Origin: Zygnema circumcarinatum SAG 698-1b
Lineage: Eukaryota > Plantae > Zygnematophyceae
DNA: 64,000 bases
NCBI GenBank assembly: GCA_037447605.1
Contig: CM074814.1
Location: forward strand, 1,364,001-1,428,000
Direction: 5' to 3'
The position numbers were made by a program, and so were the translations under genes. Below the pieces are notes generated by a model. The model had not been told where the DNA came from, made no database searches, and worked only from the letters and a program-made list of their open reading frames with translations. This document shows positions 51,361 to 54,128 of the stretch, one piece after another (the stretch's first letter is position 1; every line of letters begins with the position of its first letter).

Positions 51361-54128
51361 TTATCCGCAACAGAAGAAAGCGCTTAGAGCGGATAAAATA
51401 GCCAAGCCTCCAACGGATACTGTCACCGAAATGATGATTGTTGTTCCTGTGCCCGCGGAAAATCAAACCGAACATATCTTGACTGTTATTTTCATATTAC
51501 CCGTCAAACTAATTATTGGAATGTCTTATGTATTATATACAAAAATAGAGTCTTTACAATGATCTCCTATTTCCTAGGCATGGAAAGGTGAGAGAGTAAA
51601 GAAGGTGGTTTTCAAAATTACCGCCCGATGGTGGTGCCGGCGCTGCCGCTGCTGCTGCTTGTTTTGTAAAAGGGGAGGATACTGCAATTGAGAAACCAAA
51701 GAACTTAATGAGTGTGTCGAACGCTTTGAAAAATAACAGATTTTATTTGTCCACAGCTACAAACTGCAACACTCTCGATAAGGAAAGGGTAAAAAGAAGG
51801 AAGGTCGGTTTCATAATTACGTATTTTTCTGGGGGGAGGTGGCAGTGTGGGTACTGCTTTCGGAGGAGCAGGTACTGCAACTGAGGGAAAACAAGAATTC
51901 AATGAGTAATGGCTTTCGTCAAAGATAGTACTTTGCCGATAATGTCTAATATTTGTGCAGGAAAAAAAAGATAGAGATTACTTGACCAGTTTATGCACGT
52001 GAACAGTGAGGCTCCAATTGGTTTCTTATTCCAAACTGAGAGCAAAGGTTTAGCCGCGAGACCAGTTGTCAAGCTGGAGCGAAAAGACTGACTGGAACTT
52101 AGAAGTATTGATAACTTACTTTCGCGCACACACAGCTTACTCCCTGCAGCGGGCTGCATGTTGGCGATATCAGTTTTGAGGTAGCACAGGAGACTTCCAT
52201 TCACCAGGACGGTAATGAATCCGCGGCATTGGCAATTGCTTGCGCACCCCTGAACGCAATCTTCATCGGTTGACACAGCGAAAGATGCGTAGTCGTTCCG
52301 ATGAGCATCAGTGTCATTGAAAATTTTGAAGGTATCTGTCAGGCCCGCACATTCTCCTGCACAGCCGAGCAGAAGGGAGCAAGTGATGAACTATATAGAT
52401 GATGTTCTCTCTCTCTCTCTCTCTCTCTCTCTCTCTCTCTCTCTCTCTCTCTCTCTCTCTCTCTCTCTCTCTCTCTCTCTCTCTCTCTCTCTCTCTCTCT
52501 CTCTCTCTCTCTCTCTCTCGCCCTCTCTCTCTCTCTCTCTCTCTCTCTCTCTCTCTCTCTCTCTCTCTCTCTCTCTCTCTCTCTCTCTCTCTCTCTCTCT
52601 CTCTCTCTCTCTCTCTCTCTCTCTCTCTCTCTCTCTCTCTCTCTCTCTCTCTCTCTCTCTCTCTCTCTCTCTCTCTCTCTCTCTCTCTCTCTCTCTCTCT
52701 CTCTCTCTCTCTCTCTCTCTCTCTCTCTCTCTCTCTCTCTCTCTCTCTCTCTCTCTCTCTCTCTCTCTCTCTCTCTCTCTCTCTCTCTCTCTCTCTCTCT
52801 CTCTCTCTCTCTCTCTCTCTCTCTCTCTCTCTCTCTCTCTCTCTCTCTCTCTCTCTCTCTCTCTCTCTCTCTCTCTCTCTCTCTCTCTCTCTCTCTCTCT
52901 CTCTCTCTCTCTCTCTCTCTCTCTCTCTCTCTCTCTCTCTCTCTCTCTCTCTCTCTCTCTCTCTCTCTCTCTCTCTCTCTCTCTCTCTCTCTCTCTCTCT
53001 CTCTCTCTCTCTCTCTCTCTCTCTCTCTCTCTCTCTCTCTCTCTCTCTCTCTCTCTCTCTCTCTCTCTCTCTCTCTCTCTCTCTCTCTCTCTCTCTCTCT
53101 CTCTCTCTCTCTCTCTCTCTCTCTCTCTCTCTCTCTCTCTCTCTCTCTCTCTCTCTCTCTCTCTCTCTCTCTCTCTCTCTCTCTCTCTCTCTCTCTCTCT
53201 CTCTCTCTCTCTCTCTCTCTCTCTCTCTCTCTCTCTCTCTCTCTCTCTCTCTCTCTCTCTCTCTCTCTCTCTCTCTCTCTCTCTCTCTCTCTCTCTCTCT
53301 CTCTCTCTCTCTCTCTCTCTCTCTCTCTCTCTCTCTCTCTCTCTCTCTCTCTCTCTCTCTCTCTCTCTCTCTCTCTCTCTCTCTCTCTCTCTCTCTCTCT
53401 CTCTCTCTCTCTCTCTCTCTCTCTCTCTCTCTCTCTCTCTCTCTCTCTCTCTCTCTCTCTCTCTCTCTCTCTCTCTCTCTCTCTCTCTCTCTCTCTCTCT
53501 CTCTCTCTCTCTCTCTCTCTCTCTCTCTCTCTCTCTCTCTCTCTCTCTCTCTCTCTCTCTCTCTCTCTCTCTCTCTCTCTCTCTCTCTCTCTCTCTCTCT
53601 CTCTCTCTCTCTCTCTCTCTCTCTCTCTCTCTCTCTCTCTCTCTCTCTCTCTCTCTCTCTCTCTCTCTCTCTCTCTCTCTCTCTCTCTCTCTCTCTCTCT
53701 CTCTCTCTCTCTCTCTCTCTCTCTCTCTCTCTCTCTCTCTCTCTCTCTCTCTCTCTCTCTCTCTCTCTCTCTCTCTCTCTCTCTCTCTCTCTCTCTCTCT
53801 CTCTCTCTCTCTCTCTCTCTCTCTCTCTCTCTCTCTCTCTCTCTCTCTCTCTCTCTCTCTCTCTCTCTCTCTCTCTCTCTCTCTCTCTCTCTCTCTCTCT
53901 CTCTCTCTCTCTCTCTCTCTCTCTCTCTCTCTCTCTCTCTCTCTCTCTCTCTCTCTCTCTCTCTCTCTCTCTCTCTCTCTCTCTCTCTCTCTCTCTCTCT
54001 CTCTCTCTCTCTCTCTCTCTCTCTCTCTCTCTTTCTCTCCCTCTCTCTCTCTCTCTCGACCCACCTTGCGCTCGTCCGCACGTAAGCGCGAGAATAAGCA
54101 GAGCTGCCAGCCCCACCCGCATCGCCAT
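51361..54128 (-). CDS. Small secreted/cell-surface protein: signal peptide, PAN/Apple domain, Pro/Ala-rich linker, C-terminal hydrophobic (GPI-signal or TM) segment
   Basis: Exons 54128-54065, 52356-52141 (alternative donor 52120), 51880-51821, 51681-51622, 51446-51361. All introns are GT-AG and phase 1. Spliced product (161 aa): [161 protein letters not shown]. Confidence 0.8.
52406..54057. repeat. Giant (CT)n/(GA)n microsatellite, about 1.65 kb
   Basis: About 825 units with only small interruptions near 52520 and 54033-54040. Confidence 0.97.

Follow-up and report, generated by a model that had tools for sequence, protein, structure and literature searches.

A probable intron-split gene for a kinase-less PAN/apple-domain protein in the streptophyte alga Zygnema circumcarinatum

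The locus described here raises the question of whether five short open segments, arranged on the minus strand around a very long dinucleotide repeat, constitute a single intact gene, and whether that gene encodes a PAN/apple-domain protein devoid of a kinase. It is located in a 64,000-nt stretch of Zygnema circumcarinatum SAG 698-1b (the window, to which all coordinates refer) and is called the PAN gene below. The features of its product were assessed one exon at a time, and from the sequence the locus is probably an intact gene, split by introns, in a streptophyte alga, and is complete and kinase-less as modelled. With similar confidence, the product would comprise ~168 residues organized as a signal peptide, a ~77-aa PAN module, a ~40-residue Pro/Ala-rich linker and a C-terminal hydrophobic segment.

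As modelled, the gene is composed of the following segments:

Exon 1, 54128-54065, minus strand: 64 nt, with the ATG at 54128, 21 codons plus 1 nt, and the donor CAAG/GTGGGT.
Intron 1, 54064-52357, minus strand: 1708 nt, GT..AG, nearly all of it (GA)n on the sense strand.
Exon 2, 52356-52120, minus strand: 237 nt, symmetric phase 1-1, one complete PAN/apple module.
Exon 3, 51880-51821, minus strand: 60 nt (54 nt with the acceptor at 51874), phase 1-1, Pro-rich spacer.
Exon 4, 51681-51622, minus strand: 60 nt, phase 1-1, Ala/Pro/Ser-rich spacer.
Exon 5, 51446-51361, minus strand: 86 nt, 27 codons plus TAA (51363-51361), hydrophobic end.

The four introns all run from GT to AG with pyrimidine-rich acceptors, each junction splits a codon behind its first base (phase 1), and the reading frame contains zero in-frame stops ahead of the TAA at 51363-51361. 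An earlier note on this DNA had proposed five exons joined by four canonical phase-1 junctions; all of them are present on the minus strand and the proposal holds with two small corrections, one in the number of cysteines of the PAN module and the other in the acceptor of exon 3. At this acceptor two in-phase AGs lie 6 nt apart, so that the exon begins at 51880 (first AG) or at 51874; the latter is the counterpart of the exon 4 acceptor, and the choice alters the product by at most 2 residues. The gene is indeed missed by open reading frame (ORF) listing, as that note had stated, the only ORF listed being one of 125 aa that covers the second half of exon 2. No in-frame ATG occurs 5' of 54128 in the open frame of exon 1.

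Base composition and coding bias agree with this arrangement. The GC content of the exons is 46-64%, versus 34-39% in introns 2-4, and these introns (239, 139 and 175 nt) are similar in length to those of an Aurora-like kinase gene in the same window (190-255 nt, with the donors GTAAGT, GTATGA, GTAAGC and GTGAGT). With a codon log-odds table trained on six long coding stretches within the window, the proposed frame scored best in each of exons 2-5, summing to 1.0 bits versus -29 and -46. The start of the gene was examined with a scan for signal-peptide-like beginnings, which had to combine an ATG with a basic residue, a 10-mer of strong hydrophobicity and a G/GT donor while lacking acidic residues; it found only 2 loci in 128 kb (both strands). 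One of them is exon 1, which immediately precedes the intron in front of the PAN exon and agrees with that exon in strand and phase. The other, at position 4721 on the plus strand, may begin another secreted or membrane protein.

The identity of the module encoded by exon 2 (78 residues in translation) was addressed by profile and structure comparisons. The exon scores 26.1 bits against Pfam PAN_2 (gathering cut-off 21.1, E 9.4e-6, model positions 1-61 of 67) and 21.7 bits against PAN_1 (cut-off 21.4), while PAN_4, at 17.7 bits, stays under its cut-off of 27. The predicted PAN domain is thus found above the Pfam cut-offs for PAN_2 and PAN_1, in a sequence whose modelled fold is also of the PAN/apple type. 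The module had been described as a six-Cys PAN; its PAN identity stands and the count does not, as seven cysteines occur, at residues 2, 33, 37, 41, 43, 57 and 75. C2 and C75 are placed as in the apple-type outer disulfide, and C41 is the extra cysteine that completes a plant-type C-x3-C-x3-C-x-C cluster; judged by position, C2 could instead pair with C41 in the plant-type fashion. Two N-glycosylation sequons, NDT and NGS, are present in the exon.

In an alignment of 50 sequences (A2: exon 2 and 49 matches from the phmmer search described below), C33, C37, C43, C57 and K60 are invariant, and the four cysteines are predicted to pair as both core disulfides that tie the helix to the sheet. AlphaFold2 (AF2) modelling from the single sequence was uninformative, with a predicted local distance difference test (pLDDT) of 37.8, and modelling with the A2 alignment gave a pLDDT of 94.3 and a predicted template modelling score (pTM) of 0.83. 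The topology of the latter model is b-b-a-b-b-b (strands 9-17 and 21-27, helix 30-38, strands 45-51, 54-60 and 66-77), which in the model forms a five-stranded antiparallel sheet cradling one helix, as the PAN/apple superfamily requires. When this model was compared with the PDB by Foldseek, the top rows were almost all PAN/apple structures with a TM-score of ~0.7 (factor XI, prekallikrein, plasminogen, HGF N domain, SML-2, SRK, Eimeria PAN and MANEC). An independent comparison by VIA-align against 48,161 chains returned PAN/apple/WSC-type structures in all of the first 26 rows (Z 10.9-5.1) and unrelated folds beneath them; the Z values were 10.9 for plasminogen, 9.3 for apple 5 of TgMIC4, 9.0 for SML-2, 8.5 for SRK9 and 6.8 for yeast Wsc1.

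Relatives of the module were searched with phmmer, using the 78 aa of exon 2 against 1.84 billion representative proteins (E<=1e-3). The search produced 112 matches, the best with 37% identity, and PAN/apple proteins of 2-20 repeats account for all those that were looked up or scanned. Their sources are bacterial metagenome-assembled genomes (Thermoanaerobaculia, Myxococcota), annelids (Dimorphilus, Owenia) and environmental contigs, so that the best database relatives are multi-PAN proteins of PAN_4/PAN_1 type from bacteria and annelids. The residues invariant in A2 also account for a C[WYF]LK motif, common to 106 of the 112 matches. The extra cysteine of the C-x3-C-x3-C-x-C cluster appears among them again only in one annelid protein (P0011) and is therefore not a lineage marker. 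No kinase-like protein was found among the 112 matches; a single-domain protein such as a plant S-domain kinase needs more than ~35 bits to be listed while the scores of multi-PAN repeats are summed, and since the listing favours multi-repeat proteins, the missing plant kinases are not shown to be more distant. Against the sequences of the PDB, SRK included, phmmer of exon 2 gave no match at E<=10. Word-index protein searches, with the open frame around exon 2 (region 12-90, lengths 90-285 aa) and with exon 2 alone (lengths 43-136 aa), found no match in a collection that does not include the proteins of this genome. As a control, a 765-aa DUF1853 exon of the same window returned no self match, its relatives being at 27-29% identity in a lycophyte (the best, 29%), Amborella, Klebsormidium and one further contig, which supports a streptophyte origin; the blank word-index results therefore say nothing on the annotation or expression of the PAN gene. 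No paper was found in a literature search for the PAN domain in Closterium or streptophytes.

The segments that flank the module are those expected of a secreted and membrane-attached protein. According to the -3/-1 rule, signal peptidase cleaves after small residues at these two positions. Exon 1 begins with M-A-M-R, a basic n-region with R4, continues with a 12-residue hydrophobic core and ends in G-R-A followed by Q, with small residues at -3/-1, in line with the signal peptide that had been proposed. At the other end, exon 5 encodes 27 residues of which zero are charged; hydropathy peaks at 2.16 over 19 residues, and the sequence terminates in FFCCG before the stop. The terminal hydrophobic stretch without cytosolic domain claimed by the earlier note is therefore there, charge-free and with the stop codon directly after it. 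This stretch spans ~24 residues, long enough for a membrane span, and the terminal CC is palmitoylatable. Small residues (S, G and the junction G) lie just ahead of it and only CCG past it. Because small S-G-G residues precede the tail and nothing follows it, a glycosylphosphatidylinositol (GPI) signal is at most slightly favoured as the anchor over a tail-less membrane helix, which is about as likely given that the spacer is itself hydrophobic.

Between the module and the tail, exon 3 contains 42% Pro and one PPPP run, and in exon 4 a run of Ala is bordered by SP, AP and PP. The sum of P, A, S and T amounts to 63% in exon 3 and 79% in exon 4, and the 38 residues include six [ASTV]P dipeptides. 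Of the AP/PP-rich hydroxyproline-type stalk that had been announced, the Pro/Ala-rich composition with dipeptides of the arabinogalactan protein (AGP) type is confirmed, and its hydroxylation and glycosylation are inferred: judging from its sequence, the linker probably carries hydroxyproline and O-glycans in the manner of an AGP/extensin glycomodule. Chimeric AGPs have been defined by a signal peptide, a Pfam domain and AG glycomotifs (PMC12209756), and the corresponding sequence features are found here as signal-peptide features, the Pfam PAN domain and a P/A/S/T-biased linker with AG motifs.

The two spacer exons belong to a local repeat:

Tandem duplication, 51520-51960, minus strand: a ~200-bp unit made of spacer exon and flanking intron, 73% mean column identity.

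Exons 3 and 4 are accordingly duplicates, with length and frame kept. The two units share the acceptor TTGCAG and the donor GTAATT.TGAAA, and their splice flanks are better conserved than the diverged exon interiors. The symmetric exons, with all junctions in phase 1, suggest exon shuffling and duplication as the processes that put the gene together and extended its stalk.

This 3' region is also where a real gene could give another product, by alternative 3' splicing that would yield a soluble secreted PAN protein or forms with 0-1 spacer exons. The internal exons are all phase 1-1 and exon 5 begins in phase 1, so skipping of exon 3 and/or exon 4 stays in frame, and the two in-phase acceptors of exon 3 offer a further choice. 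Moreover, a pyrimidine-rich AG occurs early in intron 4, and read-through or the use of other AGs would end the protein before the tail. The early AG, however, would define an intron of ~45 nt, versus the 139-255 nt seen in the window; the modelled acceptors and donors are those conserved between the duplicated units, the GC of the exons is distinct from that of the introns, and an in-frame, charge-free end of 27 residues is unlikely to arise by accident. Altogether, alternative 3' splicing as the main outcome is considered distinctly unlikely.

The modelled gene, with its tail exon included, is interrupted by a repeat that occupies nearly all of intron 1, of which only 56 of the 1708 nt lie outside it:

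Dinucleotide microsatellite, 52406-54057, no strand assigned: (TC)826 on the plus strand, 1652 bp, 99% perfect, Tandem Repeats Finder score 3276.

The GC skew of the array is -0.79. Long homopurine/homopyrimidine tracts are able to form triplex DNA. Other simple repeats occur in the surroundings. The 5' flank of the gene (54130-54560) is of low complexity and G/A-rich on the sense strand (GGAGG runs, poly-G), and an upstream ATG, out of frame, lies in it near 54266. At 54883-55371, ~750 bp upstream of the ATG of the PAN gene, the pentanucleotide repeat (ATGGC)97 with 88% matches produces spurious long ORFs on both strands. Another (GA/TC)n microsatellite is found at ~58680-58980, inside an intron of a Y-family polymerase gene; long intronic GA arrays thus recur in the window.

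The size of the array in intron 1 bears on the possibility that the locus is a silent or decaying relic, that is, a shuffled PAN exon that is unexpressed and was perhaps disabled by expansion of the (GA)n repeat. The 1652-bp repeat within the intron speaks for a relic, as does the failure to find an orthologue in the phmmer or word-index searches, together with an in-frame codon score that is about neutral. On the other hand, the five exons are open, 8 of 8 splice sites are canonical, all the core cysteines of the PAN fold are kept and the module is modelled with a pLDDT of 94, and the blank word-index searches are uninformative, as the proteome of this genome is outside the databases. A relic is considered unlikely on this balance.

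Whether the modelled exons are all there is to the gene depends on its surroundings. Its neighbours in the window are the following:

128-aa open frame, 50701-51087, plus strand: ends 273 bp from the PAN-gene stop, tail to tail; no Pfam match.
Sugar transporter gene, 46000-48688, plus strand: Sugar_tr at 87 bits in the last large exon; downstream of the PAN gene.
Y-family DNA polymerase gene, 57500-61800, plus strand: Pfam IMS matches in two exons; on the 5' side of the PAN gene.
Aurora-like Ser/Thr kinase gene, 62250-64000, minus strand: several small exons, with a DIWSLGVL motif; runs off the window end.

The sugar transporter gene includes a long exon for an acidic central loop (46554-47684) with no Pfam match, reminiscent of tonoplast monosaccharide transporters.

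The presence of a kinase gene on the same strand, at 62250-64000, is the observation that would favour a larger gene, of which the PAN exons would be the ectodomain end, either of a receptor kinase or of a G-lectin S-domain gene with nearby exons. By its sequence that kinase is Aurora-like, cytosolic and without relation to the PAN gene, and its position is 5' of the signal peptide, beyond the plus-strand Y-family polymerase gene. Over 51360-38000 (~13 kb 3' of exon 5) the minus strand showed no kinase motif, and no second PAN exon or lectin exon was found in the window. The earlier note had called the protein kinase-less, and this is borne out by the kinase-free minus strand of 51360-38000 and by the TAA in which exon 5 ends. 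A larger receptor kinase is thereby effectively refuted, by the exon 5 TAA, the missing 3' kinase motif and the unrelated nature of the Aurora-like neighbour, and is regarded as extremely improbable.

Several observations weigh against an intact gene for an anchored protein. It is a gene predicted from sequence logic, and the codon-usage signal is weak in absolute terms, at ~0 bits per codon in frame. Exons 3-5 are short, and two of them, exons 3 and 4, lack stops in each of the three frames, which also leaves room for the alternative splicing considered above. The odd number of cysteines leaves one of the seven unpaired or engaged in an intermolecular bond. The architecture of a single PAN, a stalk and a charge-free C-terminal tail was found in 0 of the 112 phmmer matches, which gives it no support from conservation, and the spacer ahead of the hydrophobic tail exceeds that of textbook GPI signals in hydrophobicity. 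As regards intron 1, its (GA)n length may be inflated by assembly, and a homopurine/homopyrimidine tract of 1.65 kb could hinder transcription of the gene.

If the PAN gene is intact and expressed, a working of its product can be proposed. The signal peptide would be cleaved and the protein would enter the secretory pathway, to be tethered at the outer face of the plasma membrane by a GPI anchor or by a tail-less helix with palmitoylatable CC. The glycosylated stalk would then hold the disulfide-bonded PAN module in the wall space, where it would bind a glycan or protein ligand, and the protein may serve as an adhesin, a wall tether or a kinase-less partner of a receptor. Having no signalling or cytoplasmic domain of its own, it would therefore only bind, tether, or work through a partner. 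A role in mating recognition, as suggested in the earlier note, is possible as a conjecture. That the gene encodes an expressed, GPI-anchored and hydroxyproline-glycosylated "PAN-AGP", of a class unrecognised in land plants and serving a conjugating alga in adhesion or contact with the wall, or as a kinase-less receptor partner, is proposed tentatively and with low confidence.

The sequence suggests a plausible new domain combination, in which a single PAN/apple module is joined to a short proline-rich stalk and a tail-less anchor. If expressed, the gene would be a minimal example of how surface proteins of the alga can be built from shuffled symmetric phase-1 exons, namely a PAN exon, duplicable Pro-rich spacers and an anchor. 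The backbones and anchors of AGP-like glycoproteins in streptophyte algae are still largely unknown (PMC9614468, PMC12209756), and whether the AGP-like adhesion glycoproteins of charophytes carry GPI anchors is a question raised previously (PMC9614468), for which an expressed GPI-anchored PAN-AGP would provide a concrete gene.

Among known systems, the PAN_2 module of S-domain receptor-like kinases (RLKs) and S-locus glycoproteins (SRK9, PDB 5gyy) is similar in its top Pfam model, in the C-x3-C-x3-C-x-C cluster and in its extracellular location. The predicted fold is also alike, with the Z of 8.5 extending over 77 aligned residues, a mid-ranking structural match. In contrast to the S-domain module, that of Zygnema has the extra apple-type C-terminal cysteine and no pairwise sequence match to SRK, and the gene lacks the B_lectin, S-locus glycoprotein and kinase domains of S-domain RLKs. 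In the model, exon 1 is spliced directly to the PAN exon, and intron 1 contains the microsatellite only, with no exon for B_lectin or the S-locus glycoprotein domain; instead of the transmembrane helix and kinase domain of an S-domain RLK, the hydrophobic stretch is followed by a stop. S-domain RLKs have been reported absent from Zygnematophyceae (PMC10868138), and PAN domains are also known from receptor kinases of chlorophytes (PMC12757656).

The lineage thus possesses a PAN module that has the cysteine cluster of the plant type and does not belong to an S-domain kinase. Given the antiquity and wide distribution of PAN modules, this occurrence by itself says little on the origin of S-domain receptors. 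The suggestion of the earlier note that such a protein could be an ancestral building block of these receptors receives no specific support, PAN_2 having ranked first by only ~4 bits.

Outside plants, parallels are offered by PAN/apple lectins of apicomplexan micronemes, apple 5 of TgMIC4, Sarcocystis SML-2 and Eimeria MIC5, stand-alone modules which bind galactose-type glycans in adhesion and include structurally close matches of the model (Z 9.3 and 9.0 for the first two). PAN modules in general mediate protein-protein or protein-carbohydrate binding (PMC5485988, PMC9024836). The microneme lectins differ in being multi-module proteins, soluble or complexed and not self-anchored, and they come from an unrelated lineage with 16-17% identity. 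A looser parallel is yeast Wsc1, which, in a cell that likewise has a wall, combines a Cys-rich head of PAN/apple fold with an O-glycosylated stalk and an anchor in the membrane (PMC9024836; Z 6.8), whereas its 8-Cys WSC domain, long L5 loop, Ser/Thr-rich stalk and signalling cytoplasmic tail are all lacking in the Zygnema protein; no WSC Pfam match was found in exon 2, which has seven cysteines and not eight.

Among plant proteins, kinase-less and GPI-anchored receptor ectodomain modules are a known architecture (PMC5485988). In the lectin receptor-like proteins and lectin proteins (LecRLPs/LecPs), such as the LysM proteins LYM1-3, a module of a receptor-kinase ectodomain is likewise held at the membrane without a signalling domain, and the difference lies in the binding module, which is PAN in Zygnema. 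The chimeric AGPs of land plants are a further parallel. In these the head domains are of recognised classes, which PAN is not, and the glycomodule of the Zygnema protein spans only ~40 residues, with its glycosylation and anchor being predicted; it shares with the fasciclin-like and plastocyanin-like members of the group, and with the xylogen-like ones, a signal peptide, one Pfam domain, a P/A/S/T-rich glycomodule and a C-terminal hydrophobic signal of GPI type. In some streptophyte algae, AGPs and AGP-like glycoproteins are regarded as adhesion molecules (PMC12209756).

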